This document shows positions 358 through 45,100 of a stretch of 64,000 nucleotides of DNA, one piece after another; position 1 is the stretch's first letter, and every line of letters starts with the position of its first letter. Origin of the DNA: Guillardia theta CCMP2712 (taxonomy: Eukaryota > Protista > Cryptophyta); the NCBI RefSeq assembly GCF_000315625.1, contig NW_005434504.1, positions 36,617-100,616 of the forward strand, read 5' to 3'. The notes under the pieces were generated by a model. It did no database searches. It saw only the letters and a program-made list of their open reading frames with translations, and was not told the origin of the DNA. The position numbers and the translations under genes were made by a program.

Positions 358-795
358 ATATGCCCAAAGGATGTCAATCAGGCCGATCCAAAGCAAAGAG
401 ACATAATCAGGACTTTTTGGAGAGATTTCCGATCAATTAGTACATGAACTGGTTTATAGGTAGAAAAACCCTGGATTTTCAACTCAATTTCCAGTTGAGT
501 TTCGACCTCGAAAAAAATCCTATACGTATAAATACGTTGCAAGTTTTTTCTTCCCGGCTTCTCTCCCATATCATTCTATACCTCCCCGCGACCCCTCGGC
601 TCAAGAGGCTCATAACCTGTTTCCACGGGCCCGGACGGCCCGCACGGGCCTGGAGCTCGCCGGAGAGGCCCGGAATATGCCCAAAGGATGTCAATCAGGC
701 CGATCCAAAGCAAAGAGACATAATCAGGACTTTTTGGAGAGATTTCCGATCAATCTGGTTTATAGGTAGAAAAACCCTGGATTTTCAACTCAATT
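358..795. repeat. Left piece of the ~317/306-bp tandem satellite (about 1.4 units)
   Basis: Essentially identical to the units at 42707-45100; GGTTTATAGG at 451 and 757 (306-bp variant); stops abruptly at ...TTTTCAACTCAATT (795). Confidence 0.97.
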
Positions 796-2168
796 ATGAC
801 ATTCAGAGCATTTTCGAACATATCATGATCTTCCTGCTGCTTGTCCTTATCGACAGCCTCGTTGGGAGCTTCCTGCTGACTGTCATTATTAACAGCCTCC
901 TTGGGAGCTTCTTGCTTGTCCTTATTGACAGCCTCCTTGGGAGCTTCCTGCTGTTTGTCCTTATTGACAGTCTCCTTAAGAGCTTCCTGTTTGTCCTTAT
1001 TGACAACCTCCTTGGGAGCTTCCTGCTGTTTGTCCTTATTGACAGCCTCCTTGGGAGCTTCCTGTTTGTCCTTATTGACAGCCTCTTTGGGAGCTTCCTG
1101 CTGTTTGTCCTGATTGACAACCTCCTTGGGAGCTTCATGCTGTTTGTCCTTATTGACAGCCTCCTTGGGAACTTCCTGTTTGTCCTTATTGACAGCCTCT
1201 TTGGGAGCTTCCTGCTTGTCCTTATTGACAGCCTCTTTGGGAGCGTCCTGCTGCTTGCCCTGTTTGGTAGTACCCACAGAAGAAACAGCCTTCTGTTCCT
1301 TTAGCTTATTCTGCTTGTCTACCAATGCAGAGAAAACTTCACTTTCTTCGTCTTCTTCGTCGTCCTCACCCTCCTCATCTTCCTCATCCCCTTTCTCATC
1401 TTCTTTATCATCATCATCTTCCGACGAAGAATCTATAACCTCCATTTGCTTTTTGGATTGCTCTGTATCATCATTCGAAGACATGGCAACCTCGAGCGTT
1501 GATCCCACTGTCCGCTTAGGAATGTCCTTGATATAAACATCGTTGTGTTTGCGGAAGACTAATGAATTGACCAGAACATCAGGTTGCGACTTCATACACT
1601 GCTTCACGATATCGATGAGCACAGCATTACATGAGTCGTCAACCTGATTGGCATGCGAACTGCACAAAGAGAATGCAAAGAACTTCTTTACCTCGGTAGG
1701 ACTTTTCAGACTTTCCACATTGAATGACTTATCCTTTCTGGTAAGAGTTCGAGTCACCAATGCCATGGAACAGCCCTTGTATACTCTGTCGCCGTCGGAT
1801 GCGCACAGCAAGCAGCGAGCTTGGAATTCTTTCTCCTTGTACTTGTCAGGGTATGAAAGCTTCTTGATGTTATGCTTCACAGTAAAAGCAGCAGGCGGAA
1901 CCATGTCAAGACATGGAAGGCATTTCTCGGCGACTGAACTTCTCTTGACAAAGAACACATGATTGTGCTGCTTACTCTCTTCAGAAGATGTCACTGTCTT
2001 GAACCAATCCTTGAATTCCCACCCATAGCTAACACTAAAGGCTTCATCATACTGAATCTGTTCGGATGCAGTAAACATGACACCTTGAGACTCAAAGATG
2101 TCTGGGGCCTTTGTCCGTACACGGTGGGTAGCGGTAGCTTTCACCTTGGAGTTGTTCTTGGGTGACAT
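750..2168 (-). CDS. Hypothetical protein with acidic tract and KDKQ(Q)EAPKEAVN repeats; 3'-truncated and reads into the satellite
   Basis: Long ORF with ATG at 2168 (MSPKNNSK); no stop before the junction at 795/796; last residues (IELKIQGFSTYKPD) are satellite-encoded. Confidence 0.75.
   Translation of the reverse strand: MSPKNNSKVKATATHRVRTKAPDIFESQGVMFTASEQIQYDEAFSVSYGWEFKDWFKTVTSSEESKQHNHVFFVKRSSVAEKCLPCLDMVPPAAFTVKHNIKKLSYPDKYKEKEFQARCLLCASDGDRVYKGCSMALVTRTLTRKDKSFNVESLKSPTEVKKFFAFSLCSSHANQVDDSCNAVLIDIVKQCMKSQPDVLVNSLVFRKHNDVYIKDIPKRTVGSTLEVAMSSNDDTEQSKKQMEVIDSSSEDDDDKEDEKGDEEDEEGEDDEEDEESEVFSALVDKQNKLKEQKAVSSVGTTKQGKQQDAPKEAVNKDKQEAPKEAVNKDKQEVPKEAVNKDKQHEAPKEVVNQDKQQEAPKEAVNKDKQEAPKEAVNKDKQQEAPKEVVNKDKQEALKETVNKDKQQEAPKEAVNKDKQEAPKEAVNNDSQQEAPNEAVDKDKQQEDHDMFENALNVIIELKIQGFSTYKPD
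830..1262 (-). repeat. Coding minisatellite, about 11 copies of 36/39 bp
   Basis: Repeated TTGTCCTTATTGACAGCCTC(C/T)TTGGGAGCTTCCTG(CTG). Confidence 0.95.
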
Positions 2169-2382
2169 TGCGTGGCGACGGATCGTGGTTGTGCCGCCAC
2201 CAGAAGAGATGGGGATCAAATAGAGGGGCGGCCTTTCCCCCCTATTTTTTTTAAGAGGGGGGGGGTGGGTGGTAGTTTTTTTAAAAAATAACTCAATTTA
2301 AAAAAACACCCTACCCTACCCGATTTAAAAAAAATTAATCAAAATCACAGAAGGGTGTCTCTGACAGCAACTAACTCACATC

Positions 2383-2928
2383 ATGCAAGAAGACAAGGAG
2401 AAGGATCTGTTCCAGCGCTTCACCAAGCTGTTCCTGGTAGGTGAAAACCTGAGAGACATGATGGTTTACATGTGTAATACCTGCACCTCTGATGTTCAAG
2501 ATCCGATAACCCATACCATCTGCATCTTCCTCTCCACCCCAGTGAGGATCAGCATCACAAAGATCGGTCTGGCTCCATTTCAGGGTTTCAACACGGCGAT
2601 ATTTCCCTTCTTTTGCATGCGAGAAGAGCAAAAACATCTTCTCCTCGAAATACTCCAATTTATGCAGGAGAACAGCAGGGCGACGCTTTCAACGCAGATG
2701 GGCGGGGGCGGGATGGCAACGCTGAAGCCCGACGGGCAACGCATCTACCTCGACACATCCGAAGTCATCTTCCAGTTCTTCCAGGCCACGAAGGAGTCCG
2801 AGAGGACGGGGATGAAAGCACATGTCAGGGACAAGGTCTGCAACATCATCCTTCAAAGGGTATGCAGCGCAGTTCATATCCCCCGGCGGACGCTGAACGA
2901 GATCATGGAGAGGGCAAGGGAATTGTGA
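2383..2928 (+). CDS. Hypothetical protein (181 aa)
   Basis: ATG-initiated ORF divergent from the previous gene across an A/T-tract intergenic region. Confidence 0.7.
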   Translation: MQEDKEKDLFQRFTKLFLVGENLRDMMVYMCNTCTSDVQDPITHTICIFLSTPVRISITKIGLAPFQGFNTAIFPFFCMREEQKHLLLEILQFMQENSRATLSTQMGGGGMATLKPDGQRIYLDTSEVIFQFFQATKESERTGMKAHVRDKVCNIILQRVCSAVHIPRRTLNEIMERAREL

Positions 2929-2958
2929 ATCATTAAACGCTGTTTTATTCTTTTCACG

Positions 2959-3522
2959 TCACTCATCATCGTCATCCGACTCACGTCCACGCTTAGATGG
3001 CCTTCCAAGCTGCTTCCTCAGTACCTCAATCTCAAGCCTCTTCTTCTCGTTCTCGAGCTCAGCAGCCTCCTCATTGAGCTTGTACATCGCCAGCTTGTGA
3101 CGAAACTCACAAGACTGAGAAACTTGGGGAAGATACTTTTCCTGTGACTTGTGCCCATATATCATCAAGAAGTGGATCCAACCATCATTCTCCTTGATCT
3201 TCTCGGCGTCTTGAACATCCTTCTCCACTTGTTTGTTGATGAAGGTGACATCACTTTCGTTCAACAACCGAAACAGGGCATCCCAGATCACTCTGGCAGA
3301 CACGTACAAGACATCATTATCATGCATCTCATACACAAAGTCATCAGACTTTTCCGTCTCAATGATCTGCACAGTGAAGTCCACCAAGAACTCATCCAAC
3401 CTCTTGATGTTCTTAGAGCTTGGATCGATATGCTTCTTCAGCACATCATCGAGGTTGTATAGGGTGGGCCTCTGCAAAAGCACGTCACCGTCAGACTTTG
3501 GCAACCAAAAGGAGTGTGGCAT
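2959..3522 (-). CDS. Hypothetical protein with C-terminal coiled coil
   Basis: ORF 2959-3606; TATAAAA (- strand, 3558-3564) favours the ATG at 3522. Confidence 0.7.
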   Translation of the reverse strand: MPHSFWLPKSDGDVLLQRPTLYNLDDVLKKHIDPSSKNIKRLDEFLVDFTVQIIETEKSDDFVYEMHDNDVLYVSARVIWDALFRLLNESDVTFINKQVEKDVQDAEKIKENDGWIHFLMIYGHKSQEKYLPQVSQSCEFRHKLAMYKLNEEAAELENEKKRLEIEVLRKQLGRPSKRGRESDDDDE

Positions 3523-3886
3523 CCTCTTGTTGTGTTGGGCCGCCGAGCCACTCTCCGTTTTATACAACCCCGCTCCTACCCCACCTCCGCCAACGAAGCA
3601 GATCATTTATCACCACCCTCACCCGTTAAATTACCGGGCTCTACCCCGTGAAACCACCCACCCACCCCTCTTTATCCCAATTTCCGCATTTAGGAAAAAA
3701 AAGAGGACTCGACCACCCACCCCTTGCAGAGGGGGTTTAGATTTAAATTAAATATACCCCCTGTCTGTACCTAATTACCACGGGTAATAAATACCACCCA
3801 CCCCCAATTAAAGCCATCCACGAACCTCCCGGTCCCCCCAATAAAAGCGGGGTGGGGGGAATTTCGCGCACCCCCAGCTTTCCCCC

Positions 3887-5779
3887 ATGTGTGCCGCCAC
3901 GCTGCCACACAATCAATGGATCGTGCGCTATTCGCAGGTCGCGGCCTACGGCCACTGCGCCCTCCACTCCTACAACAGATCCCAGTTCCCCCTCCCCTCG
4001 TCCATCACCGTCGTGCAGGAATTCACCGTCGGACCGGTCACCGCGTTCGCCGCTCGCACCGCCGCCGATGACATCGTCATCTCTTTCGGCATCGACGAGG
4101 AGGAGGAGCGCAGCATGCTCCAGCACGGGGGACTGACTCAGCTCGCCTCCGTCTCACCCAAGTGGAGTGACAAGAGCATCAACGTCAAGGTCCACACGCC
4201 CGTCGCGGATCTGGCCCGTACCTTCATTCAATCTCCGGCGCTCGACGAGCTCTCCTCCTTCCTCCGCGCGCAACCCGCCGGCACCTTCGTCTTCACGGGA
4301 TTCTCCTTCGCGTGTAACGTCGCCGAGCTGGTCCACCTGTTCTACTGCAGATTCGGGAAGATTGGCCGCGAGCTCACCTGCGTCTTCTTCGGCCAGCCCT
4401 CCATCGGCACGATTATGTACGAGACCGTTCGCGGCGCTCACCTGCGGAGGCATTCCAATATCCCGATTCAGAAATCCATCAGCTTCTACCGCCACGATGA
4501 CAACATCGGTATACTGTTTACGGGAAAGGTGCGCGGAATCTTCTACCCCGACTTTGATAGCGGGAGCACTGGTATCATCCGAAGGTCCATGGAATTCGAC
4601 GGAAAGGTGCATGGCTACCCCCAGCACATCATCTCCACCGAAAGCAAGGAGGACATCCTTGGAGGGCACGACGTGGCCAAGTATCACGAGTGCATCTGTA
4701 AGATAGAAGCTTTGGGGGATGACCGGATCGATAATATCCCATACGAGAACAAGTACAACGCATGCTTCCAATCTGCCACCACCCTCGCGCAGGAGATCAG
4801 TGAGAAACTCCTGCTCAACCCCAAGCCGTTTGTCGAGCGCATTTTCCCCGTACGCGAACCTACAGAGTATTTCCTGGCCATCATGCATGGTAACAAGTGC
4901 ATAGACGACGGGCTCAACGACGGAGAGACGAAAGATATCATCAACAGGGCAGTCTCGCAGGACCTTACCAAGCCTTTCATGGGACTCGAGAACATCTCAC
5001 TGATGAAGAAATTCATCGACCATGTCGTATTCCTCATCGAGCGCAGCATGAAAAAGGAATCCCTCCCCTTTCCAAGCACTGTCCACAACGTTCGCGACCT
5101 TCCGGATTCGGACATCATCGCCATCTGCACCGCCATCGCCATCACGCAGGACGATCACATATTGAACTCCATCTTGCACCTGCATGTCTTTGATATCCGC
5201 CGCAAGGCCTGCGCCATAATGGCCCATCTCCGCCTGATAGTTGATATATGCAAGTTTGCCACCAACTGGAACGTCGAGTGCATCTGGAACCCCCACTTCC
5301 AGTTCGTCACCGACCTCGACAACTACCTGATGTCTTTCTCCAACTGGCAAGACAACATCAAGTACGAGCTCGACGATTTCAAGGCAGACAAGGATTTCTG
5401 GGAACAGCTCAAACTTTATTCCGACGATTCCCGCTGCCGCTACTACTTCTTCCTCTCGCAGGAGGTCTTGAGAACCGCCACCAAGTACCAGTTGCCCATA
5501 TGTGTGCGCAACCCCCTCCTGTTTTCCGAGTCGGAGATCGCGATGGAGGCGCTGCCAGCCCCGCCCGCCTCCTCTGCCGAGCCGAAGGTGCGCGAGAATC
5601 CATTCATCTTCACACCGAAGGACCTTCTCAAGGAGGAGACATTCTGGGATGACATGAAGAACTACGCGCACGAGAACAACATCGATTACAGGTCGATACA
5701 CATGCTCCGCCTCCTCTGCCGCTACATGGACAAGCACGATGTCGACATCTTTGTCTACCTCCCCCCTAGCGGTAACTGA
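3887..5779 (+). CDS. Class-3 lipase-like alpha/beta hydrolase with C-terminal extension
   Basis: FVFTGFSFA (variant GxSxG elbow), CVFFGQPSIG, YRHDDNIG and HDVAKY occur in lipase_3 order. Confidence 0.6.
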   Translation: MCAATLPHNQWIVRYSQVAAYGHCALHSYNRSQFPLPSSITVVQEFTVGPVTAFAARTAADDIVISFGIDEEEERSMLQHGGLTQLASVSPKWSDKSINVKVHTPVADLARTFIQSPALDELSSFLRAQPAGTFVFTGFSFACNVAELVHLFYCRFGKIGRELTCVFFGQPSIGTIMYETVRGAHLRRHSNIPIQKSISFYRHDDNIGILFTGKVRGIFYPDFDSGSTGIIRRSMEFDGKVHGYPQHIISTESKEDILGGHDVAKYHECICKIEALGDDRIDNIPYENKYNACFQSATTLAQEISEKLLLNPKPFVERIFPVREPTEYFLAIMHGNKCIDDGLNDGETKDIINRAVSQDLTKPFMGLENISLMKKFIDHVVFLIERSMKKESLPFPSTVHNVRDLPDSDIIAICTAIAITQDDHILNSILHLHVFDIRRKACAIMAHLRLIVDICKFATNWNVECIWNPHFQFVTDLDNYLMSFSNWQDNIKYELDDFKADKDFWEQLKLYSDDSRCRYYFFLSQEVLRTATKYQLPICVRNPLLFSESEIAMEALPAPPASSAEPKVRENPFIFTPKDLLKEETFWDDMKNYAHENNIDYRSIHMLRLLCRYMDKHDVDIFVYLPPSGN

Positions 5780-5895
5780 ATAGAGTCTTTCAAGTAATAT
5801 ACGAAAAAAAGGAAGAAGGGGTGTGTTTCGTCCCCAGCGCTCCGCGGGGATAATTAGGCAAGACCAGGGACGGGAAAGTCCATAGAAAGCGAGGC

Positions 5896-6597
5896 ATGAT
5901 CTACCTCCTCCACCGCCTCTTCGAGGACAAGAGGCTGACCTGCGTCCTCTTGATGACCTGGATGGTGATGGTGCTGGCGATCTTCTCCGAGCTCGGGGTG
6001 ACGGACTCGAACTTCATGACACTAGGGCCAGGCGAGCACTCCAAGATCATGGGGGTGGAAATCAACAGCTGGTACAAGTGGAACTGCGTCGCCGTCTTCA
6101 CCTTCGTCTCGACCTCCATCAACGACTTTGTCGGCGACGCCATCTCCCCCTGGATCCAGAACACCATCCAGGACCACAAGACCAAGTTCCTCCCCTACTC
6201 GAAGTTCACCTGCATCATGATCACGCAGATCTGGGCGCTGTACTGCTGCGTCATGAACGTCTTCGCGCTCTTCGTCATGCTCTCCCAGGTCGATTTCCTC
6301 ATCATCCGCATCTGCGCCGACCTCCTCGTCAACATCTACACCAGCCTGCGGTTCATGAAGGGCAAGGTCGTCGACCCCGAGCGCTACGCCGCCTGGATGA
6401 GGGCCGAGGGACCGGGGCACGGCCAGTCCCACTGCTGCCACACCCCCGAGCCCGGTATTCTCCTCTCATCCATTGCCGTGAGACAGGAGCACGACGAGAA
6501 AGCTGCCGAAGACAAGCATGCCAACGAGACCGAAGAGCCCGAAAGGAGGGGGAAGAGCATGGACCGCCTGTTGGTTGATATTCACAAGCACCCTTAG
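5896..6597 (+). CDS. Multi-pass membrane protein (about 4 TM)
   Basis: Hydrophobic segments; the LGP..INSWYKW..SQVDF pattern resembles, from memory, an uncharacterised family in giant-virus and marine metagenome data. Confidence 0.75.
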   Translation: MIYLLHRLFEDKRLTCVLLMTWMVMVLAIFSELGVTDSNFMTLGPGEHSKIMGVEINSWYKWNCVAVFTFVSTSINDFVGDAISPWIQNTIQDHKTKFLPYSKFTCIMITQIWALYCCVMNVFALFVMLSQVDFLIIRICADLLVNIYTSLRFMKGKVVDPERYAAWMRAEGPGHGQSHCCHTPEPGILLSSIAVRQEHDEKAAEDKHANETEEPERRGKSMDRLLVDIHKHP

Positions 6598-7280
6598 CGG
6601 TACATTCCGTTTTGGTAGTCCCGGAAAGTCGAAGCCACGTCTTGAAGGTCCGAGCGGATCGCCGCCAGTGTGTTCATGTTCAAATCCATCGTGGTCTGAG
6701 TTGGGTCTATTGTAAGGGCTCTGATAATCTTATGATTAAGCTTGTCGTTTATCAGTAGATCCACAATTTTCTCTTTCATTCTTACGAGTGATTCTGTAAT
6801 CTTTTTCATATTATTTATCTCATCACTTAAGTTATTCAATCTAGCACGTATCACCTTCATAGTTTTCGATTTTTGGTGAATCATACTGGCGTGTGTGTGT
6901 TCACTACCCGTAAAACTCTGATTGTCCCATTTCTCTTCTGCTGACTCCATCATCCTTTCCAATACCAGAACTCTTTCCTTTAATTTCTTATTTTCCTCGT
7001 TTAAGGGAAACAAATTATCTACTTTTACATTTAAATTATCCACTTTACGCATGTACGCAGATTGCTTTTGTATCTCTTCTCTAACAAATGCCATCTGATT
7101 AGTGATCATTTGCAAATATGTTTTGGTTTTATCATGCATTATCACATCAATCTTTGCCTCCATGATTTGAATGATATCTTCCTTTAACTCATTCATCGCG
7201 CCTTTATCTAATTCACCTTCCGACTGGACATCAGATTCATAACCCCTCTCTGGAATCTCTGCACTCCCTGCCTCCGACAT
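6594..7280 (-). CDS. Coiled-coil protein with C-terminal DYQNGMYR tag
   Basis: 228-aa ORF, heptad-rich, AT-rich core. Confidence 0.75.
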   Translation of the reverse strand: MSEAGSAEIPERGYESDVQSEGELDKGAMNELKEDIIQIMEAKIDVIMHDKTKTYLQMITNQMAFVREEIQKQSAYMRKVDNLNVKVDNLFPLNEENKKLKERVLVLERMMESAEEKWDNQSFTGSEHTHASMIHQKSKTMKVIRARLNNLSDEINNMKKITESLVRMKEKIVDLLINDKLNHKIIRALTIDPTQTTMDLNMNTLAAIRSDLQDVASTFRDYQNGMYR

Positions 7281-7384
7281 CCTTACCCAAAGAACCCCAA
7301 GGTACTTTTATGCAAACCGATCGCGTACTTCACACGACGCCACGAAAAGATCTATATACATCGGAAGCAAAACATCTTGTAGAT

Positions 7385-8098
7385 ATGGCCCCAAGCTTCA
7401 GCATCAGTGAGGAGGACGGGGAGGAGACGACGAAGCCCCCACCCGAAACACGCAACGACAGCCCCCTCCGCAAGAGCCCGATCCAATGTATCTTCGTGTT
7501 CCGGCGGCCGGTGATGCTATCCGACCGGATCATCAAGCTCATGACGGGGCCCTTCGCGCACGTGGATCTGTATGTTCATCGGGAGGAGAAGCCCAACGAC
7601 AGCCCGAGTCTCACCACTTTCATGGGGGAACACTTCAGCATGTCGGTGAACATGCGAAAGTCCTACAACAGCCGGGACTATGAGGGACTGCACCTTCGCC
7701 TCGACCCTGTAGAGAGCGCGAAGCTCTTCGATTACGCCATCGACCTGGTGGAACGCCGCGTGCCGTACAATTTTGCCGACCTGCTGTACCAACCGATGAA
7801 GGCCGTCCTCCCGGATAGCGGATTCTTTGAGGACGTCCCTAACGAAAGCTCCTTGCAGGTCAAAAAGGTCTTCTGCTCGCAGGCTTTCGTCCTAGCACTG
7901 CGCAACAGCCTGCACAACGACGACCTCGCCGGGGCACTCATCGACGAGAGCCCAATCCAGCGGAAGAAGCTGCTCTGGAGGCTGATCAGCGAAAACAGCC
8001 GGCTCTGCACCCCCAGTGACCTCTACCACATCCTCAGGCCGCACTGCAGGAGGGTGGACATGGACCGGCTCCGGCACGGCCACTTGTCCTACACATAA
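7385..8098 (+). CDS. Permuted papain-like NlpC/P60 hydrolase (YiiX/YaeF, LRAT, poxvirus G6R-like)
   Basis: His before Cys: GPFAHVDL ... VPYNF ... VFCSQAF ... TPSDLY. Confidence 0.75.
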   Translation: MAPSFSISEEDGEETTKPPPETRNDSPLRKSPIQCIFVFRRPVMLSDRIIKLMTGPFAHVDLYVHREEKPNDSPSLTTFMGEHFSMSVNMRKSYNSRDYEGLHLRLDPVESAKLFDYAIDLVERRVPYNFADLLYQPMKAVLPDSGFFEDVPNESSLQVKKVFCSQAFVLALRNSLHNDDLAGALIDESPIQRKKLLWRLISENSRLCTPSDLYHILRPHCRRVDMDRLRHGHLSYT

Positions 8099-8105
8099 TA
8101 AACAT

Positions 8106-8828
8106 TTAAGAAATGCCCACGGTGTGGCTTCTGGACTCCATCAATATAGACAGCTTCACGTGGGATACTGAGCAGCAGAAGATGCTGTACCATCTCTGCA
8201 CGAGGGCGTCGTCTTCCTGGAAGAGCCTGCACAGCTGGTCGACCTCGTCTGTGTCCTGTCTCCCGACCCATACCCGCACCTGGTTTTTGACGATGTGCTC
8301 GATCTTACAACAAAACCACAAATAGAGGATGAAGGGGGAGAACTTCTGGTGCACCACAATCGAAAACGAATCCTTCCCCTGCCTTCCCACCTCCACACAC
8401 ATGTCCGACCTGGCTCCCGAGATGCTGCAGATGAACCACCCATTCTTGCGTCGTACGGGGGGTGCGGAACTCGTCATCACCTCCAAGCAGAGACGATATA
8501 GCTTGTCCTTCCCCTGTGTCTGCAGCGTCTCCACCATGGCTTGCACAGTCTTGATGTCACTCATCACCTGTTGCACCCCTGTATGGACTTTGATTGCCCA
8601 TGCATCGGCGTTCTCCTTGCACTGCGAAAAGTACCGCTTGTACTGGTTGTCGTCCCCGATGACCTCAAAGGCCTTGTTGCAGCAGTAATCCTTGAAGTGT
8701 TCATATGTGCTAAGACATGAGGTAGACTCCCGAAGCTCATCCTCCACCGCCACATCCTTCGTCGCACCCACGATGCCGCGCAGCTCCGATACAAAATCGG
8801 ACGCACTCATCTGAGGCCGACCCGGCAT
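8106..8828 (-). CDS. Hypothetical protein (240 aa)
   Basis: ATG ORF tiling between neighbours. Confidence 0.75.
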   Translation of the reverse strand: MPGRPQMSASDFVSELRGIVGATKDVAVEDELRESTSCLSTYEHFKDYCCNKAFEVIGDDNQYKRYFSQCKENADAWAIKVHTGVQQVMSDIKTVQAMVETLQTQGKDKLYRLCLEVMTSSAPPVRRKNGWFICSISGARSDMCVEVGRQGKDSFSIVVHQKFSPFILYLWFCCKIEHIVKNQVRVWVGRQDTDEVDQLCRLFQEDDALVQRWYSIFCCSVSHVKLSILMESRSHTVGIS

Positions 8829-8957
8829 TGATTACCCCACGGTTGCCGTTGAGCCCCGCGACCGTTTTTTTTTTAAAAAAAATTCAAATTCCCCCTCGAG
8901 ACCCTATTTTAAAAAAGAGGGTCGCCGCCGACCGTACCCTCACACCACACACCACGC

Positions 8958-9242: not shown

Positions 9243-9311
9243 ATAATAATAAAAAAAGGATCCATCCATCACCTTGCACACCCCCGCGTCACGCACGGCA
9301 AAAACACATCG

Positions 9312-10229: not shown

Positions 10230-10237
10230 AAAGAAAA

Positions 10238-10684: not shown

Positions 10685-10770
10685 ACTTTACCACCCCCCT
10701 CCCATGCACTCCCCAAATACACGGATGGAACGAAGCATTACACACAATCCATTTATTTACGATCCAGGCA

Positions 10771-11004: not shown

Positions 11005-11006
11005 CC

Positions 11007-11246: not shown

Positions 11247-11287
11247 TTCCCTGCCATGCCACCACCCATCCGCATCTTAAATGCGCT

Positions 11288-34717: not shown

Positions 34718-34789
34718 ATTCCCATATCATATTATCATCATAAACGTTACGAAATTTACTCTCATGTTAGTTTAGAAAGACTTAAAAAC

Positions 34790-36499: not shown

Positions 36500-36652
36500 G
36501 CTACTCTCGCGTGGCGGGAATAGTCTTGGGACGGGCGGCGGCAGGACGGGCTACTTGGAGGGAAAACCCCTGTTTTTTTTGGGTATTTCAAAAAAAAGAA
36601 AAAAAAACACAGGAAAAAAAAGAACTAGGGGTGGGCTTCACTCCCACACAGC

Positions 36653-36841
36653 ATGGTGATAGAGCAAGAGGAGAAGGAGAAGCGAATCCGCTCCCTCGCT
36701 CTCTCCATCGAGCTCATCAAGAACAACACAACCTACACACGCGCCGACGGTATCCAGCAGAGCTTCAACTACCGGGTGTCTGTTAACTCCCCCTCGGGTT
36801 GTTTTTTAGAAGTCACGCAAACCAATGACCCGACATTGTAA
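36653..36841 (+). CDS. Small hypothetical protein (62 aa)
   Basis: ATG ORF after an A-tract region, filling the gap. Confidence 0.4.
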   Translation: MVIEQEEKEKRIRSLALSIELIKNNTTYTRADGIQQSFNYRVSVNSPSGCFLEVTQTNDPTL

Positions 36842-36861
36842 TTGAAGGATCAAGCTTCGTT

Positions 36862-37530
36862 TTAGGTCTTGTCTGGTTGTTTAAGAGCGAACATCATGAT
36901 GAAATGAAAATGAGATCCTGAAGTATGCTTCTGTATGTTATCCAAAAAGTTGCTGTAATTAAATTTTATTCCGAATCTTTCGTTGATCTCTTTTTCCATA
37001 GTTTTCATTCCACGTATTATTTGATCGAGATGAGACAATCTGTAATTCATTATCATATATGGGTCATTCAATGAATGGATATACAACAAAGCACCTATAC
37101 GATTCTCTATGCCGATTGAAGTTACGTTCAATATATCATTATTTTGTTTCTGTATGATATCAAAAAGTTTTCCACGTTCGTTCAATTCTTCGTAATAAGC
37201 ATACAAGGATTTAGTCAAATAACTAAGGGTTCGATTCAATGATGCATTTGTAACGAAATTCGCATTTCTGAATTTAACTATTTTGTCAATGATCGCATCA
37301 AGATCATTCGCATACTGTTCAATGTTCATAATGTCATTGTGCAGATTCCCAATGATTGAATCTAAAGCTTGATTTATCTTTAATAGATCCACTTGCAAAA
37401 TTTGTTTTAGATCATCTTGCATTTCTTTCATCATTTCCTGGTACAGATCATGAGCAGTGTCCAACTTTACATAGATGTCATGCTCGCTGAGCATCATTCC
37501 CATGTGCTTCTTGCACTCCGCGTAATCCAT
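36862..37530 (-). CDS. AT-rich helical/coiled-coil protein
   Basis: ATG at 37530 after a (GT)n(GA)n leader and TATATAAAA. Confidence 0.7.
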   Translation of the reverse strand: MDYAECKKHMGMMLSEHDIYVKLDTAHDLYQEMMKEMQDDLKQILQVDLLKINQALDSIIGNLHNDIMNIEQYANDLDAIIDKIVKFRNANFVTNASLNRTLSYLTKSLYAYYEELNERGKLFDIIQKQNNDILNVTSIGIENRIGALLYIHSLNDPYMIMNYRLSHLDQIIRGMKTMEKEINERFGIKFNYSNFLDNIQKHTSGSHFHFIMMFALKQPDKT

Positions 37531-37683
37531 CTCTCTCTCTCTCTCTCTCCACACACACACACACACACACACTCACCGTTTTATATAGCGATGATCACCC
37601 TGTGATGGGCAGCATGTAGTGGGTACAGGTCTGATTTAGCCAGTACCCCTACAGAGACTGACATTCAGGGGTGGGGTACTCTG

Positions 37684-38083
37684 TGGTACTAAATTGAGTA
37701 ATTTTATAATTACTAATAAAGCCCAGGCCCCCAGGGAAGGCCCCCCCTTGGCCAGAATCTGAAAACCGTTAAACCGTTAAACCGTTGAAAACCGTTAAAA
37801 TTTATATTTTGCATATATTTCTTGCATTGGTAAAAAAGTAGGACAGGTAGTAGTAGTAGTAGTAGTATAGTAGTAGTAGAGTAGTAGATAGTAGTAGAAG
37901 TAGAGTAGAGTAGAGTAGAGTAGAGTAGAGTAGAGTAGAAGTGTCCTACCATTGTCCTACTTTTAACGGTTTAACGGTTTAACGGTTTAACGGTTTAACG
38001 GTTTTCAGATTCTGGCCAGGGGGGGGGGCTTCCCTGGGGGGCTCGGCTGTATTACTATTATAAAATCACTCAATTTAGTACCA
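37684..38083. repeat. Palindromic element P2: inverted arms with (AAACCGTT)n around a (TAG)/(TAGAG)n core
   Basis: Arms TGGTACTAAATTGAGT...CCCCAGGGAAG..TGGCCAGAATCTGAAAACCGTT and the reverse complement; inner IR AAAAGTAGGACA/TGTCCTACTTTT. Confidence 0.95.
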
Positions 38084-38145
38084 TAAATCACACCACCCCT
38101 ACATACACTCTCCGTGTAGGGTGGGGTACTGTGTCCTACCGCGTC

Positions 38146-39516
38146 CTACCATCGTCCTATCCTCTCCTGAACCGCGTCTAGGATGCGGTCGAGGACGGGG
38201 ACGAGCCTTGGGGTGAGGTGGCGGTTTGCGGCGGAGGTGATGAACCATGCGAAAAGGTAGGACAGTGCGGCGAAGAGGGTGGCGACGCGTCCGAGGCGGA
38301 GGAGGCGCATGAGGGCGGCGAGGAGGGCGGCGACCGGGTACTGGTAGACGAGGCCGAGCCTGGCGATGGGGAGGTGCTCGGAGAGCCACCTTGGGAGGTC
38401 TGCGGCGGCGGCGGCCTGGTGGAGGGAGCAGAGGAGGATGAAACCTGCGGGGACGGCGCGGGAGACGACCGGGTCGAAGTGGGTCATGCAGGGGGCTCCG
38501 AGGGCGATCCTGGCGCAGAGGGCGTCGTCGGTGGGCTGGGTCTGGTCGATCTGCGAGACCCACACGAGGAAGTGGAGGAAGAGGATGTGTCTCCAGTAGC
38601 GGATGGCGCGGATGCCTGCCCAGTGGAAGACGCCCGCGGTGGTCCTGCGGCTGATGTAGATGTAGCAAACGCAGCCGAGGGTGTACTCCGAGAAGCGGGT
38701 GAGGAGGAAGCGGAAGGAGTAGTAGAAGTGGTTGTCGCGCATGTTGACCGAGGTCATGATGCATGACACGGAGATCTGGAAGAAGATGTTGGCCATGTTG
38801 ACGTACTCGTGCCTCTCGGGGAAGTTCCTGACGGTGGTGGCGATGGCGAGGCGGACGAGCGGGAAGGCCGTCCTGCAGAGGAGGAGGGTCATGAGGATGG
38901 AGGTCGACTCGTTGAAGAGCCTGTAGTGGGCCTGCTGCTGGGTCTCCATGAAGGGCGAGAGGTAGAGGAGCGAGCCGAGGTTGATGGCCCAGGTCATCGG
39001 GCTGGACCACAGGCCTTGCGCCATCATCCCAAAAGGGATGAGGAGGAGGTTCACCAGGGCGAGGTGCGGGTAGACCTCCGCGTTGACGTCGTAGAGCACG
39101 CGCAGGGGCTTGGCGTCTTCACTCCAGTAGTGGTGGGAGTCGGCGCAGCCCGTGAGGATGAAGAGGACGGTGACGGCGTCGACGGTGATGCTCTCCATGG
39201 TCTGCAGGACGCAGAAGATGTTGCTCCGCTGCTTGTCGTCGTCGTCGGCCCTGGAGAGCACCAAGGAGGTGTAGAACGCGAAGGTGACGATGAGGCAGAG
39301 CGACTGGGAGGCGCGGACGAGGATGAAGGTCGTGTCGAGGTCCAGGTCGTCGTCGTCGGTGTAGTCGCCCGGTGGGATGCTTGGGTCGTTGGCGGTGTCC
39401 CTGCTCGGCGGGTAGACGAAGGCGTCCCTCTCTCCCTCCTCGCAGGCCTCGTGCAGGTTCATGGGTTCCTTCTTGGGGTTTTCGTCCTTGGCATCCTGAT
39501 CGTGGATTTCCTTCAT
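38146..39516 (-). CDS. Divergent acyltransferase-3 (OafA-like) membrane protein
   Basis: About 10 TM; AVTVLFILTG resembles VxxFFxLSG and TRFSEYTLG resembles RLxEFxxG. Confidence 0.55.
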   Translation of the reverse strand: MKEIHDQDAKDENPKKEPMNLHEACEEGERDAFVYPPSRDTANDPSIPPGDYTDDDDLDLDTTFILVRASQSLCLIVTFAFYTSLVLSRADDDDKQRSNIFCVLQTMESITVDAVTVLFILTGCADSHHYWSEDAKPLRVLYDVNAEVYPHLALVNLLLIPFGMMAQGLWSSPMTWAINLGSLLYLSPFMETQQQAHYRLFNESTSILMTLLLCRTAFPLVRLAIATTVRNFPERHEYVNMANIFFQISVSCIMTSVNMRDNHFYYSFRFLLTRFSEYTLGCVCYIYISRRTTAGVFHWAGIRAIRYWRHILFLHFLVWVSQIDQTQPTDDALCARIALGAPCMTHFDPVVSRAVPAGFILLCSLHQAAAAADLPRWLSEHLPIARLGLVYQYPVAALLAALMRLLRLGRVATLFAALSYLFAWFITSAANRHLTPRLVPVLDRILDAVQERIGRW

Positions 39517-39651
39517 CCCTCCCTCTGGCCTTCCCGTGGTCCTCCCGCGTTTATGTAGCGCCGGGTCGCGGCGGGGTGAAACCTGCCTTGTGGGGAACGG
39601 CGCGGAGATTATATAAGCGCGCGGCTGGGGCTGGATGGTACTGATTCCATC

Positions 39652-40011
39652 ATGGATCGTGAATGGAGGAGAAAATGGACACTCAGGCCCGAGCTGAGAG
39701 CGTTCCTTGAAGAGGAATCTGTCCCTGCATCCAGCTTCAGTACAAATCTGAGTCATTCACAGTTGAGTGCTGAACAAATCGAGAAAGAGAGGATCGTTAT
39801 CTCATCGGATGACGAAAATTCTAAGCCCTGCAAGAAGAAGTGTACCAAGGCCAGCGCAAAGAGTATCAAGACCAGCGTGAATAATGCCAAGGCCAACACG
39901 AAGAATCTTTCCCCCAGCAAGGAGAAGGAAGTATCCAACGAGAAGGTTACCAAGGCTGCGGACAACAAGCTCTCCAGTGATGATGGGGAAGAATGGGAGG
40001 AGTTGAATTGA
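39652..40011 (+). CDS. Small charged protein, paralogue A
   Basis: TATATAAG upstream; ends SDDGEEWEELN. Confidence 0.7.
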   Translation: MDREWRRKWTLRPELRAFLEEESVPASSFSTNLSHSQLSAEQIEKERIVISSDDENSKPCKKKCTKASAKSIKTSVNNAKANTKNLSPSKEKEVSNEKVTKAADNKLSSDDGEEWEELN

Positions 40012-40322
40012 GTATCCGGCGAAGAGTAGTATACCCTTCTTTCCCTCCCGCTCCCGCTTGCGTAGTGAATTAAAGTACGAAAGAATATCCCCTCGTGGTC
40101 TTGTTGAAGCCTGTCCCGTGGTGGACGGCGCATGTATTGTATTTTAGGACTTACGCGGTGGGATTGGGGGATTGGGGGCTGCGTGTTGGGTGCAGGATAT
40201 ACATTCTCTTGTTCGTGGCGGGGGATGGTCCTCGTGCTGGTGGGGGGTGAAACCTGCCTTGTGGGGAACGGCGCAGAGATTATATAAGCGCGCGGCTGGG
40301 CCTGCATGGTACTGATTCTATC

Positions 40323-40814
40323 ATGGATTCTGATCGGATGGAAGCAATGAAAGTGGCAGAGTTGTTTACCGAGGTCTTGCGCGAATTGGGTAAACTAGAG
40401 AATAAGAATGGCAACTTGAATACATTCAAGGTTGCCTGGGAGAAGTATCGCAAAGTTTTGAAAGCAACCATGGTCGACGAGCAAACTATGGTCGACGAGC
40501 AACCTATGGTCGACGGGCAAACTATGGTCGACGAGCAACCCGTGGTCGATGAGCAAACGTTTGAAAAAATACGCAAGAACATGATGGCTGAGACCATTCA
40601 TGAATTGTTCAAGCGTGGCATCTTGTTCGAAACGATGGACGCTATGCCGTGCTTACACAGGAATACGAAAGCAAAGACGAGCGATCAAGAAAAGAAGAAG
40701 ATGGATGATGTACACAACACCCGTGCAAACGACAAGCCCCTCGGCGAGGAAGAAAAGGACCGCGAGGAAATGGAGGAAGTATCCGACGATGAAGAATTAG
40801 AGGAATTGAGTTGA
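40323..40814 (+). CDS. Small charged protein, paralogue B, with five MVDEQx repeats
   Basis: Same upstream block; 18-bp repeats at 40470-40558; ends SDDEELEELS. Confidence 0.75.
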   Translation: MDSDRMEAMKVAELFTEVLRELGKLENKNGNLNTFKVAWEKYRKVLKATMVDEQTMVDEQPMVDGQTMVDEQPVVDEQTFEKIRKNMMAETIHELFKRGILFETMDAMPCLHRNTKAKTSDQEKKKMDDVHNTRANDKPLGEEEKDREEMEEVSDDEELEELS

Positions 40815-40999
40815 GCATGCGTAGAAGAGTAGGCAAACCCTTCTTTCCCTCCCGCTCCCACTTGAGTAGTGAATTAAAGTACGAAACAATATCCCCTCGT
40901 GGTCTTGTTGAAGCCTGTCCCGTGGTGAACGGCGCGGGTATTGTATTTAGGACTTATGCGGTGGGTTTGGGCGATTGGGGGCTGCGCGTTGGGAGCGGC

Positions 41000-42706
41000 A
41001 TGTATATTCTCTTGTTCGTGGCGGGGTTGGTCCTCGTGCTGGTGGTAGAGCGGGTGGTTCACTCTGTTCTGTCGCTGGTGGTGGACCGCTCGATGCGCCC
41101 TACCAAGAGGTATGCCTCCATGTCTCTCGTGGGCACGTTCTTCCAGAACATCTTTGCTTACTTTTTCTTCGCCTTCAATGTCCTGGCGATGACGCTGGGT
41201 TTCATCGCGCGGAACCTTCTCTGGTTTGGATTCCTGGTGCTGGTCATGGCAGTTCTCAGCATGGTGTTGGACTTTGCTCCCGGGTTGGTTGCCGAGTATG
41301 TGTACGTTTACAACGCCGGGCTGGGGACCTACATTCACTTCTTCATTGTCCTACCGGTTCAGTTAGTGGAGTTGCTGTTTAGCCATGTCACCGCGCTGTA
41401 CAACTGCGTCACTTGGATCGTGAATGGGGTGTTCCTGTCGGTGCTGGCCCCGTCCTTCCTTGCGGACAACGTGAATGTCGGATGGCTCCCTAGGTTCGGC
41501 ACGTCTTTCTTCAAGTTCTCGGGTGAAATGGTCCTGTCGATCTCGTCATACCTTGTCAATGTGATGGCGTGCGCGACGAACCCCCTCGGCGGGGTGCCCA
41601 GAGGCGGCACCGGCAGCTTCTTGATCCTGAACGCGACGGGTTCGGTGGAGTGCTTCGAGCCCGGCATGATCAATCTCGACCTTATAACGCCTGCGGGCAG
41701 CTTCCGCGATATGTGTCTCTACATGGCAAGGTTCGTGGTGTTCTCCTGCCCCGCTGCGAATGCGGTCATTGATTTACTAACATTCCCGCTGAGCGATATG
41801 AACCTGTACAAGGGCATCCATTGTATCGTGAACGCGCTTTTGGGTCTGTTCGTCCAGCTCCCCTTCGTAACCCTGCACCGCTGCCGGTTCGGTGCGACGC
41901 TCCCGATGCTCGGCGTGCACCAGCGCATCCTGTGCGCCCCGGACTTCCGCCCGGCGATGGATCTTTCGGTAGCTGGGGCTAGGTTTATGGGCAGGGTGGT
42001 CGATAATTGGTTGGACTCTTCGCTGGTGATCCTGGAGACGCTTTTCACCGGCTCCGCGCCGCAGTGCGACCCCGTCCCCATCCCCCTGAGCTACAGCGAT
42101 GATGACTCCCGGGCGCTTTTCGGGGGCAACTTCCGCGCGGTGGTGGGGCTGACTCCGGGGATGTACGCGGTGACGGATGGGATCAGCACGGAGTATAACA
42201 TCTTCTACAAGCAGGTGACAAGGGAGATTGCTTACAGGAACTGGCCCTTTCCTGTCGAACCGGCGTACGGCATCGCGGCGGTCAAGTACGGGGAGCTGCC
42301 CGAGGGCGATGTGGCGGGAGACCTGACGACGGGGATGCTGGGGTGCGAGTGCCTGGACGTCCCCGGCGTAGGGGCGCAGATCACCTGTGCGATCGTCCCG
42401 TACCTCTCCGGGAACAACATACCCTCCACCACGGGCTCCGTGGCTTCGGTGATCCAGGAATACCTCACCTCCAACACCGTGGAGCAGGCGGTGAACTCGA
42501 GCAACGCGACGCAGCGCATCCCGGTGACCTTTTCTGTGCCCTCTTCGAGCCAGTACGCGACCTGCAAGAGGCTGAAGATCCAGGTGGAGTCGCTCAGGTG
42601 GCCCGCGACGAGGGTGTCTGCAACGAGCACTAGCCCCGGTCCTTGGAATCAGGTGGGTGGAGCGGCCCAGGTGAATGTCCTGGATGTGGCCAGGGGGGTA
42701 GGGGCG
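41000..42706 (+). pseudogene. Large multi-pass membrane protein, 3'-truncated by the satellite
   Basis: ATG at 41000 (MYILLFVAGL); the ORF runs into the satellite at 42707 with no stop of its own. Confidence 0.75.
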
Positions 42707-45100
42707 CCTCGAAAAAAATCCTATACGTATAAATACGTTGCAAGTTTTTCTTCCCGGCTTCTCTCCCATATCATTTTATACCTCCCCGCGACCCCTCGGC
42801 TCAAGAGGCTCATAACCTGTTTCCACGGGCCCGGACGGCCCGCACGGGCCTGGAGCTCGCCGGAGAGGCCCGGAATATGCCCAAAGGATGTCAATCAGGC
42901 CGATCCAAAGCAAAGAGACATAATCAGGACTTTTTGGAGAGATTTCCGATCAATTAGTACATGAACTGGTTTATAGGTAGAAAAACCCTGGATTTTCAAC
43001 TCAATTTCCAGTTGAGTTTCGACCTCGAAAAAAATCCTATACGTATAAATACGTTGCAAGTTTTTTCTTCCCGGCTTCTCTCCCATATCATTTTATACCT
43101 CCCCGCGACCCCTCGGCTCAAGAGGCTCATAACCTGTTTCCACGGGCCCGGACGGCCCGGACGGGCCTGGAGCTCGCCGGAGAGGCCCGGAATATGCCCA
43201 AAGGATGTCAATCAGGCCGATCCAAAGCAAAGAGACATAATCAGGACTTTTTGGAGAGATTTCCGATCAATTAGTACATGAACTGGTTTATAGGTAGAAA
43301 AACCCTGGATTTTCAACTCAATTTCCAGTTGAGTTTCGACCTCGAAAAAAATCCTATACGTATAAATACGTTGCAAGTTTTTTCTTCCCGGCATCTCTCC
43401 CATATCATTTTATACCTCCCCGCGACCCCTCGGCTCAAGAGGCTCATAACCTGTTTCCACGGGCCCGGACGGCCCGCACGGGCCTGGAGCTCGCCGGAGA
43501 GGCCCGGAATATGCCCAAAGGATGTCAATCAGGCCGATCCAAAGCAAAGAGACATAATCAGGACTTTTTGGAGAGATTTCCGATCAATCTGGTTTATAGG
43601 TAGAAAAACCCTGGATTTTCAACTCAATTTCCAGTTGAGTTTCGACCTCGAAAAAAATCCTATACGTATAAATACGTTGCAAGTTTTTTCTTCCCGGCTT
43701 CTCTCCCATATCATTCTATACCTCCCCGCGACCCCTCGGCTCAAGAGGCTCATAACCTGTTTCCACGGGCCCGGACGGCCCGCACGGGCCTGGAGCTCGC
43801 CGGAGAGGCCCGGAATATGCCCAAAGGATGTCAATCAGGCCGATCCAAAGCAAAGAGACATAATCAGGACTTTTTGGAGAGATTTCCGATCAATCTGGTT
43901 TATAGGTAGAAAAACCCTGGATTTTCAACTCAATTTCCAGTTGAGTTTCGACCTCGAAAAAAATCCTATACGTATAAATACGTTGCAAGTTTTTTCTTCC
44001 CGGCTTCTCTCCCATATCATTTTATACCTCCCCGCGACCCCTCGGCTCAAGAGGCTCATAACCTGTTTCCACGGGCCCGGACGGCCCGGACGGGCCTGGA
44101 GCTCGCCGGAGAGGCCCGGAATATGCCCAAAGGATGTCAATCAGGCCGATCCAAAGCAAAGAGACATAATCAGGACTTTTTGGAGAGATTTCCGATCAAT
44201 TAGTACATGAACTGGTTTATAGGTAGAAAAACCCTGGATTTTCAACTCAATTTCCAGTTGAGTTTCGACCTCGAAAAAAATCCTATACGTATAAATACGT
44301 TGCAAGTTTTTTCTTCCCGGCTTCTCTCCCTTGACTCATTTTATACCTCCCCGCGACCCCTCGGCTCAAGAGGCTCATAACCTGTTTCCACGGGCCCGGA
44401 CGGCCCGCACGGGCCTGGAGCTCGCCGGAGAGGCCCGGAATATGCCCAAAGGATGTCAATCAGGCCGATCCAAAGCAAAGAGACATAATCAGGACTTTTT
44501 GGAGAGATTTCCGATCAATTAGTACATGAACTGGTTTATAGGTAGAAAAACCCTGGATTTTCAACTCAATTTCCAGTTGAGTTTCGACCTCGAAAAAAAT
44601 CCTATACGTATAAATACGTTGCAAGTTTTTTCTTCCCGGCATCTCTCCCACAGGTTTATAGGTAGAAAAACCCTGGATTTTCAACTCAATTTCCAGTTGA
44701 GTTTCGACCTCGAAAAAAATCCTATACGTATAAATACGTTGCAAGTTTTTTCTTCCCGGCTTCTCTCCCATATCATTCTATACCTCCCCGCGACCCCTCG
44801 GCTCAAGAGGCTCATAACCTGTTTCCACGGGCCCGGACGGCCCGCACGGGCCTGGAGCTCGCCGGAGAGGCCCGGAATATGCCCAAAGGATGTCAATCAG
44901 GCCGATCCAAAGCAAAGAGACATAATCAGGACTTTTTGGAGAGATTTCCGATCAATTAGTACATGAACTGGTTTATAGGTAGAAAAACCCTGGATTTTCA
45001 ACTCAATTTCCAGTTGAGTTTCGACCTCGAAAAAAATCCTATACGTATAAATACGTTGCAAGTTTTTTCTTCCCGGCATCTCTCCCACAGGTTTATAGGT
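42707..45100. repeat. Tandem satellite array (317, 306, 319 and 120-bp unit variants)
   Basis: GGTTTATAGG at 42968, 43285, 43591, 43897, 44214, 44533, 44653, 44970 and 45090; units nearly identical. Confidence 0.98.

Follow-up and report, generated by a model that had tools for sequence, protein, structure and literature searches.

The window analysed here, a 64-kb stretch of scaffold JH993134.1 of Guillardia theta CCMP2712, carries a 41,911-bp virus-like insert within a single unit of a 317-bp satellite, which we interpret, with an estimated probability of roughly 78%, as an endogenous viral element (EVE) derived by illegitimate end-joining capture at a satellite break. In the proposed scenario, a double-strand break would have occurred inside one unit of the pre-existing array, where two adjacent hairpins fold, and a sub-genomic, linear piece (41.9 kb) of a large dsDNA virus, itself broken at two arbitrary places within two unrelated genes, would have been ligated there through blunt end joining that used no microhomology, at the cost of 16 bp of satellite.

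Insertion site and truncated terminal genes

The anatomy of the locus, directly established at both junctions, comprises the following features (window coordinates):
358..795 (438 bp), + strand: satellite remnant left of the insert, made up of 1.38 units (317-bp family) and broken off at phase 301
796..42706, no strand: virus-like insert, 41,911 bp, recognised by ORF content, metagenome synteny and paralogous copies in G. theta
42707..45087, + strand: right satellite array, ~7.5 units, restarting at phase 1
796..2219, - strand: left terminal gene, encoding an acidic decapeptide-repeat protein, cut once at the left bound of the insert, C-terminal part missing
40811..42706, + strand: right terminal gene, encoding the first 632 aa of a giant membrane protein, cut once at the right bound of the insert

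The satellite consists of head-to-tail tandem units of one non-coding family (period 317 bp, 97% matches, ~5 kb in total over three blocks), with unit lengths varying from 306 to 319 bp and internal duplications of 89 bp and 120 bp; neither Rfam nor tRNA scanning of the window gave a match. With the intact unit at 43023-43339 used as a phase ruler, exact-string and phase checks place the left satellite end at phase 301 (position 795) and the right restart at phase 1 (position 42707) in identical orientation. Only phases 302-317 (TCCAGTTGAGTTTCGA, 16 bp) are lost from the interrupted unit, in full agreement with an earlier sequence-only reading of this DNA, which had described an in-register insertion with 16 bp missing. 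Flanking satellite is indeed present on both sides, as that reading held, but the left part amounts to only 438 bp and is bordered on its left by a 2,651-bp element with terminal inverted repeats (TIRs), beyond which, left of the window, the family continues in another array of 2.1 kb. The 64-kb window contains 0 N bases, and therefore both insert junctions lie inside contiguous sequence. Both break points coincide with the loops of two adjacent satellite hairpins (fold z = -3.0, equalled in 1 of 200 shuffles), and these hairpins may have caused the break.

The probability of such a register arising by chance, previously put at ~16/317, had to be revised: calculated as (17 to 33)/317 and halved for orientation, it is ~3-5% for two unrelated junctions. 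A more useful reading than chance is that the register is the outcome expected of any single-break insertion into a pre-existing array.

Both terminal ORFs stay open where the insert passes into satellite, and their homologues or paralogs continue past both ends. The left gene can be aligned with its JH993102.1 paralog as far as the final codon of the insert, after which the paralog runs 112 aa further. For the right gene, paralog frames stay open for at least 655 and at least 569 aa further, a Hanusia phi homologue extends at least 146 aa beyond the cut, and relatives are 4,019-4,996 aa long. A 41.9-kb circular genome cut once was ruled out, as the cut genes at the two ends differ.

The lack of integration machinery is an equally direct observation. 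No direct or inverted repeat common to both insert ends was found on comparison of these ends, the phase check revealed no TSD, and Pfam detected no integrase, transposase or recombinase domain in ~30 insert ORFs, which sets the insert apart from self-integrating elements (Polinton/PLV, DNA transposon, provirus) and bears out what the letters had suggested at first reading. The locus displays, instead, the attributes of an EVE captured by end joining, namely host DNA joined on both sides, a small target deletion, arbitrary end points and 0 bp of microhomology at each junction (an approximate count, since the paralogs used as donor proxies are 88-95% identical). Being sub-genomic, with two unrelated genes cut, the insert is not a self-integrated whole virus, and the original proposal of an arbitrary genome piece caught at a break in the array is upheld; the repair pathway itself was most likely non-homologous.

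Gene content and viral affiliation

Selected features inside the insert are:
3887..5779, + strand: 630-aa ORF showing a weak match to a class-3 lipase domain, missing from the colinear metagenome contig
12342..16067, - strand: 1,241-aa coiled-coil ORF, missing from the colinear metagenome contig
17481..17877, no strand: palindromic module in which an AT-rich microsatellite lies between ~80-bp inverted arms that end in (AAACCGTT)n
20162..25516, - strand: cysteine-rich ORF of 1,784 aa, membrane-anchored at its C-terminus, whose relatives carry Ephrin_rec_like repeats
27755..29089, + strand: 444-aa 5' nuclease of XRN/FEN1 type, conserved more widely than any other insert gene
34790..36499, - strand: 569-aa conserved ORF, 21 homologues, AF2 pLDDT 78
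37722..38046, no strand: another palindromic (AAACCGTT)n module, shared in position with two other copies
38146..39756, - strand: 536-aa membrane ORF, which a paralog or relative matches in several frames

The insert has a dense, intronless gene style, with 32 ORFs of at least 100 aa covering 89% of its length (shuffles reach 14-20%) and a GC content of 54.5% vs. 44-48% in the flanks. A single frame is kept in 62 of 65 comparisons, and, by counts, a frame change between copies is seen in two genes, one of them the 536-aa membrane ORF. The palindromic module at 37722..38046 is also the end point of another viral fragment.

Indirect evidence for a viral origin comes from dense metagenome contigs (58-170 kb), with which the insert is syntenic at 27-83% identity, although no capsid gene was seen. 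Seven insert genes are colinear with a 58-kb contig, and the insert is colinear with a 67-kb contig (Ga0645784_00247) at 77-83% nt identity. The nuclease gene has 148 homologues, and in JGI metagenomes 357 relatives of it lie on contigs of up to 170 kb; its predicted structure (AF2 pLDDT 93) matches XRN1/XRN2 and giant-virus XRN exonucleases in Foldseek. No relative of the nuclease family was found in IMG/VR. For the 569-aa ORF, comparison of the predicted fold with PDB gave no significant match, and its best match, the baculovirus LEF-3 single-strand-binding protein (probability merely 0.25), was set aside. None of five sequence queries against PDB (the nuclease ORF, a profile of its family and three other single ORFs) gave a match.

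The description of the insert as virus-like stands on metagenome synteny and gene style, and not on a capsid or polymerase gene, neither of which was recognised in the window. A Pfam survey of ~30 insert, 8 flank, 5 beyond-junction paralog and 20 large metagenome-relative ORFs returned only weak or non-diagnostic matches (Lipase_3, Ephrin_rec_like, ankyrin, kinase, Snf7, DcpS), and neither the window nor the ~25 large ORFs scanned from relatives yielded a hallmark gene such as one for a capsid, polymerase or terminase. An assignment to Nucleocytoviricota (GEVE) finds no support in the same Pfam analysis of window and relatives, which gave no hit for a double jelly-roll capsid, family B polymerase, A32 ATPase or VLTF3. 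No HK97-fold major capsid, triplex, portal or terminase of Mirusviricota was recognised in the window or the relatives' ORFs by Pfam and PDB sequence searches, with two ORFs folded. Mirusvirus capsid homologues are listed for G. theta GCA_000315625.1 by Zhao et al. (clade E03; PMC10827195), and this published signal may stem from the virus behind the insert. The metagenome relatives of the insert are dense and Pfam-dark, and the virus lineage, likewise Pfam-dark, is common in marine and freshwater metagenomes.

Donor DNA and competing explanations

Copies 77-97% identical to the insert occur at five or more other G. theta loci, spread over four more scaffolds (two loci on JH993102.1 and one each on JH993210.1, JH993527.1 and JH993078.1), the identity forming a mosaic along the length of the insert; these copies are partial, with many assembly gaps. 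The multi-copy state raises an alternative source for the inserted DNA, namely another endogenous viral copy from which the piece was moved or copied (as an excised piece, as eccDNA or in templated break repair). Templates for such a transfer evidently exist, and the same junction anatomy would be expected of it. Yet all sampled copies differ from the insert by 3-23% nt, with dN/dS between copies of 0.05-0.37 and the identity mosaic; these values mark the divergence as one under selection rather than the result of recent neutral copying, and imply that the copies diverged as functioning viruses. We consider an intragenomic donor unlikely and infer that an infecting or episomal virus, not a chromosomal copy, supplied the fragment. 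Several related virus strains have left pieces in the G. theta genome, and these differently bounded pieces, diverged under selection, point to repeated exposure of G. theta to one virus lineage. Close relatives, which are widespread in metagenomes, are transcribed in the sister species Hanusia phi.

An assembly artefact, in which a viral contig was chimerically joined to collapsed satellite reads, deserves consideration given an old Sanger WGS assembly with gap-rich sister copies. Junction support comes from this single Sanger-era assembly, and an exact look-up of the four junction-spanning ORFs in a protein collection found no independent assembly. Nevertheless, both junctions are non-homologous joins in gap-free sequence, whereas misassembly driven by repeats joins via homology and not at unique junctions; two independent chimeras falling in the same unit and orientation, 16 bp apart, would have a chance of ~3-5% at best. 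An artefact is, therefore, very improbable.

Still less credence can be given to the idea that the satellite is a viral repeat region, the integration or rearrangement having proceeded by homologous recombination of viral with host arrays. Tandem repeats are frequent in large DNA viruses, and the arrays do bracket the insert as direct repeats; however, the 317-bp unit is missing from the five other loci, from ~1 Mb of metagenome relatives and from IMG/VR (searched with a 49-mer), the bordering genes are cut mid-frame, a 16-bp deletion is not expected of recombination, and an unrelated transposon sits in the same array. We accordingly reject the satellite as a viral repeat, the condition under which the earlier reading would have been refuted. 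Equally hard to sustain is the integration of a whole viral genome that has since shrunk to 41.9 kb: erosion is common among giant endogenous viral elements and the other G. theta copies are also partial, but loss of both viral ends should have removed or shifted the satellite, yet the flanks match within 16 bp, and the insert is still 89% coding, with a single frame kept in 62 of 65 comparisons. End-joining capture of a viral fragment at a satellite break thus remains the preferred reading.

Neighbouring insertions and comparison with known systems

Several independent foreign insertions are found in this locus (the virus fragment, the TIR element, an older viral remnant and two chromovirus fragments), those outside the insert being listed here with the terminal satellite piece:
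1..357, no strand: last 357 bp of the 2,651-bp non-autonomous TIR element, which sits in the 317-bp satellite family
49200..50509, - strand: older remnant, 62-69% aa identity to the insert membrane gene at 29194-30861, in opposite orientation
57994..59865, - strand: chromovirus (Ty3/gypsy) integrase fragment with chromodomain
61105..63333, + strand: second chromovirus integrase fragment with chromodomain
63903..64000, no strand: piece of a 332-bp satellite, at which the scaffold ends

The TIR element is a transposon inserted in register in the same array, 438 bp from the virus insert, between satellite phases 169 and 170 with 0 bases lost; it has a perfect 10-bp terminal inverted repeat exactly at both ends, and neither a TSD nor an ORF of at least 100 aa was found in it. 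The 332-bp satellite adjoins two other viral fragment ends on JH993102.1. The right flank also encodes a glycosyltransferase with unnamed homologues that are merely 25-27% identical.

The view of the satellite as a landing pad for foreign DNA gains from the second in-register insertion and from the contacts with the 332-bp satellite, which lend some support to satellite arrays as preferred landing sites, in a sample that is small and non-random; passive accumulation in repeat-rich, probably heterochromatic DNA accounts equally well for the clustered insertions. It is a rather remote prospect that G. theta satellites would capture fragments of infecting viruses preferentially, their hairpin units breaking often, and that the resulting loci would then give heritable silencing signals in analogy to EVE-bearing piRNA clusters. 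Viral fragment ends repeatedly meet satellite arrays in this genome.

Among known systems, the GEVEs and the endogenous mirusvirus signal in G. theta (PMC10827195) resemble this locus as dense intronless ORF blocks in an algal nuclear genome, multi-copy, partial and located among repeats and transposons; the insert differs from them in the lack of a hallmark gene and in having both junctions base-resolved inside one satellite unit. A giant-virus insert of Phytophthora parasitica similarly lies in a gene-sparse, TE-rich region (PMC8204020). Polinton-like viruses and virophage-like elements of 14-40 kb are integrated in cryptophytes, including G. theta (PMC12220804). These possess an integrase, TIRs, a TSD, a capsid and pPolB, none of which is present in the insert.

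Large DNA viruses beside host tandem repeats are also known from the integration of HHV-6 and Marek's disease virus into telomeres and from a mirusvirus at a chromosome end in Aurantiochytrium. In contrast to these integrations, which involve whole genomes and viral-host repeat homology, the G. theta insert is a sub-genomic piece, attached by non-homologous joins, of a virus that lacks the satellite repeat. EVE-rich piRNA clusters of insects (e.g., Aedes) trap foreign DNA and share with this locus the presence of several foreign insertions in one repeat-rich place; to our knowledge, a small-RNA defence of piRNA-cluster type is not established in cryptophytes.

A further parallel is the non-homologous end joining that captures extrachromosomal DNA at double-strand breaks, as in NUMT/NUPT, hepadnavirus, AAV and transgene integration, where the same lack of integrase and TSD, small target deletion, arbitrary donor ends and zero to few bp of microhomology are observed. 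Overall, the locus reveals no new kind of system and represents an ordinary route of viral DNA fossilisation, very cleanly documented, as a base-resolved record of a large-DNA-virus fragment entering a protist chromosome through a single break, joined bluntly, at a cost of 16 bp and without viral machinery, and it differs from the established cases of end-joining capture in the far larger size of the insert (41.9 kb) and in a target that is a satellite unit with hairpin potential.

Register of the insert within the satellite array

With an intact satellite unit (window 43023-43339) as the ruler of phase, i.e., base position within the 317-bp unit, exact-string searches place the end of the left satellite block at phase 301 (window 795) and the resumption of the satellite, in the same orientation, at phase 1 (window 42707), with a loss of exactly 16 bp of one unit and no N anywhere in the window. 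These results therefore bear out the sequence-only reading, which had described the virus-like insert (window 796-42706) as lying in register within one satellite unit, and the comparisons with longer homologues below agree with its claim that both end genes are cut. An exact protein match locates the window on scaffold JH993134.1 of G. theta CCMP2712 (GCA_000315625.1), at bases 36617-100616. Two unrelated junctions would show such register and orientation with a chance of about 3–5%; the simpler statement is a single break in one unit of a pre-existing array, filled by the insert.

Satellite array and its two insertions (L004, DNA directly upstream of the window on the same scaffold)
L004 3190-5324: further array of the same 317-bp family, 2.1 kb, within the ten kb fetched upstream
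L004 5325-7975 (last 357 bp = window 1-357): non-autonomous TIR element, 2,651 bp, between the 2.1-kb array and the 438-bp block
Window 358-795: left satellite block, only 438 bp
Window 42707-45087: right satellite array, about 7.5 units of 306-319 bp each, with one 120-bp internal duplication
Window 43296-43358: fold-forming motif, recurring in each satellite unit, a three-way structure with two hairpins

The TIR element has perfect 10-bp inverted repeats (CATAGCGTTG / CAACGCTATG) exactly at both termini, no ORF of at least 100 aa and no second copy in the DNA fetched. Satellite phase runs from 169 to 170 across it, and it therefore represents a second in-register insertion, without base loss or target duplication. 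The array was thus interrupted twice, independently and at sites 438 bp apart, once by this non-autonomous TIR transposon and once by the 41.9-kb block. As a separate observation, each 317-bp unit has a 106-aa ATG-to-stop ORF spanning approximately one unit (window 444-1304; e.g., L004 3296-3616), which has no homologue and is probably meaningless.

The left-end ORF (796-2219, minus strand) aligns with its paralog on JH993102.1 to the last insert codon; the paralog is 112 aa longer, and the JH993102.1 copy continues with another 8 kb of viral ORFs past the equivalent point. The right-end ORF (40811-42706) aligns, likewise to the last insert codon, with a Hanusia phi protein extending at least 146 aa further, and its frame stays open past the equivalent point for at least 655 aa and at least 569 aa in two other G. 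theta copies (L006 and L008, respectively). Homologues in metagenome relatives reach 4,019-4,996 aa, and the window therefore retains only about the first eighth of this gene. A circle opened once was rejected because the two cut genes are unrelated. The insert thus comprises only part of a genome, broken at two arbitrary points, for which no places are given other than the insert's own bounds.

Gene content, relatives and other copies in G. theta

ORFs of at least 100 aa number 32 in the insert and account for 89% of its 41,911 bp (14-20% in shuffled controls), and its GC content is 54.5% vs. 44-48% in the flanks. Beyond coiled coils and one weak class-3 lipase domain, Pfam finds almost nothing in these ORFs. 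For the best conserved gene (27755-29089), 148 homologues were recovered, the closest named ones being Hanusia phi transcripts (67% and 42% identity) and the remainder marine and freshwater metagenome proteins on contigs of up to 227 kb; a scan of JGI metagenomes gave 357 relatives. Its AlphaFold model (pLDDT 93) matches XRN1/XRN2 and giant-virus XRN-type exonucleases. Seven genes on a 58-kb metagenome contig keep the order of window 20.2-36.5 kb, and a 67-kb JGI contig, which has neither the lipase-like gene nor the 1,241-aa coiled-coil ORF of the insert, is colinear over window 2.3-24.5 kb (77-83% nucleotide identity).

Several further observations concern these genes. Proteins at least 90% identical to the 118-aa ORF 17966-18322 (plus strand) occur across several metagenome assemblies from JGI, ENA and Logan, in one case on a 67-kb contig; environmental samples therefore contain elements very close to the one in G. 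theta. Homologues of at least three insert genes (P0002, P0005, P0131, P0173; 42-69% or higher identity) occur in the Hanusia phi transcriptome set; therefore, that culture either expresses a related element or carried an infection. In GenBank, adjacent viral ORFs are joined into very large spliced gene models (2,606 aa at window 19322-27577; 6,366 aa on JH993210.1, L006 17106 onward), a probable artefact of running eukaryotic gene prediction over viral DNA that lacks introns. Two palindromic modules (17481-17877 and 37722-38046) consist of G/C-rich inverted arms of about 80 bp, ending in (AAACCGTT)n and flanking an AT-rich microsatellite. The second keeps its position in L006 and L008, lying beside an assembly gap in the latter, and is the end point of the L099 fragment, while the (AAACCGTT)2 16-mer has no match in five metagenome relatives (L002, L003, L009-L011). 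Such a module represents either an intergenic hairpin native to the virus or a MITE that it acquired.

Exact-cluster look-ups and fetched DNA revealed insert-related segments at five other G. theta loci.

Insert-related copies
JH993102.1: two segments (L005 and L099)
JH993210.1: one segment (L006)
JH993527.1: one segment (L007)
JH993078.1: one segment (L008)

Compared with the window they vary by region between 77% and 97% identity, a mosaic that suggests recombination among viral strains or gene conversion among copies; L008, for instance, rises from about 87% (window 25.5-31.5 kb) to about 95% (31.8-42.7 kb), and L006 behaves likewise. Paralog and relative ORFs match the insert in one frame in 62 of 65 comparisons, the other three (two genes) having a frame change between copies whose direction is not tellable. 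Since dN/dS between copies is 0.05-0.37 (eleven gene comparisons), divergence took place mostly under purifying selection in functioning genomes, not after neutral chromosomal duplication, and the best reading of the copies is therefore that each was acquired separately, from related strains. A chromosomal copy is a less likely donor of the insert than a virus, no sampled copy being close enough. A diverged remnant (49200-50509, minus strand), 4 kb beyond the right array and opposite in orientation, has 62-69% amino acid identity to the insert membrane gene 29194-30861 and is an older, separate viral insertion.

Junction anatomy and joining

With paralogs as donor proxies, microhomology is 0 bp, since shifting either junction by even one base breaks the match; the insert ends have no direct or inverted repeat in common, and the target site shows no duplication, only the 16-bp loss. 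Although no independent assembly confirms these joins, misassembly is an unlikely source of them, since neither collapsed repeats nor chimeric clones produce a pair of non-homologous joins 16 bp from each other within one unit of gap-free sequence. The preserved satellite register is at odds with a whole genome that integrated and later eroded, and the insert, as first noted from sequence, carries no TSD, TIR or integrase of a self-integrating element. A viral origin of the satellite itself, which would have undone the capture reading, is rejected because searches for the 317-bp unit gave no match in the other G. theta copies, in metagenome relatives totalling about 1 Mb and, with a 49-mer, in IMG/VR.

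Folded as single-stranded DNA, the 48-bp unit stretch at the break forms an outer stem around two hairpins (-9 kcal/mol; z = -3.0, with 1 of 200 shuffles equally good), the left break point falling in the loop of the first hairpin and the right in that of the second. Such structures may have made the satellite unit break-prone. The most probable event is a break in one unit of the existing array, filled by a sub-genomic viral fragment through end joining.

Satellite association and place among endogenous viral elements

The proposal that the satellite acts as a landing pad for foreign DNA gains some support from the TIR element in the same array and from viral-fragment ends, 4 of 5 visible ones touching satellites, yet weak selection explains this equally well; an archive or small-RNA role would be purely hypothetical. 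In L005, viral sequence gives way to a 332-bp-unit satellite exactly at the base corresponding to window 11082. Fragment L099 (9.5 kb, corresponding to window 29177-37814) adjoins 4.3 tandem copies of the same satellite, beyond which lies a 166-bp satellite; the other end of the fragment is inside the palindromic (AAACCGTT)n module. Counted as events, 3 of 4 touch arrays, a probability near 0.04 against a local satellite share of about 23% (our own tally of virus-adjacent DNA only, which inflates the share).

Pieces of the 332-bp satellite
L005 20452-20549
L099 13479-15791
Window 63903-64000, its last base being the end of scaffold JH993134.1
Window ~57149-57199, near a 216-bp tandem repeat (56750-57148)

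The neighbourhood also holds two chromodomain-integrase fragments, and the locus looks repeat-rich and is probably heterochromatic. Either more frequent breakage or lax selection against inserted DNA would yield this satellite association, the part of the case that merits follow-up. By eye, the 166-bp satellite of L099 resembles the reverse complement of a 166/171-bp repeat at L004 8-727. The intronless ORF 51385-54222 (minus strand, 945 aa), with a nucleotide-diphospho-sugar transferase domain, may be of host or viral origin; its homologues (1,270-1,525 aa, on contigs of up to 190 kb) are only 25-27% identical.

With a cryptophyte alga as host, the element is a protist virus. No capsid, polymerase or packaging domain turned up in about 25 large neighbouring ORFs of the metagenome relatives, the confident predicted fold of a conserved 569-aa ORF has no match among solved structures, and IMG/VR holds no relative of the nuclease gene; the source is therefore described as a large, Pfam-dark, virus-like genome. 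Its most likely candidate identity is the mirusvirus-type signal already published for G. theta, Zhao et al. having reported HK97 capsid homologues of mirusviruses in this assembly (PMC10827195). Within the data at hand, all from sequence reading and comparison, the insert does not group with Nucleocytoviricota, nor, having no integrase, TIR or TSD, with self-integrating elements. It is a non-retroviral endogenous viral element of a protist, probably allied to that mirusvirus-type signal, and an unusually clean example. Its junction anatomy is the signature of classical non-homologous end joining, known from organelle DNA, hepadnavirus, AAV and transgene insertions, and the case works in the same way as end-joining capture of foreign DNA in general.
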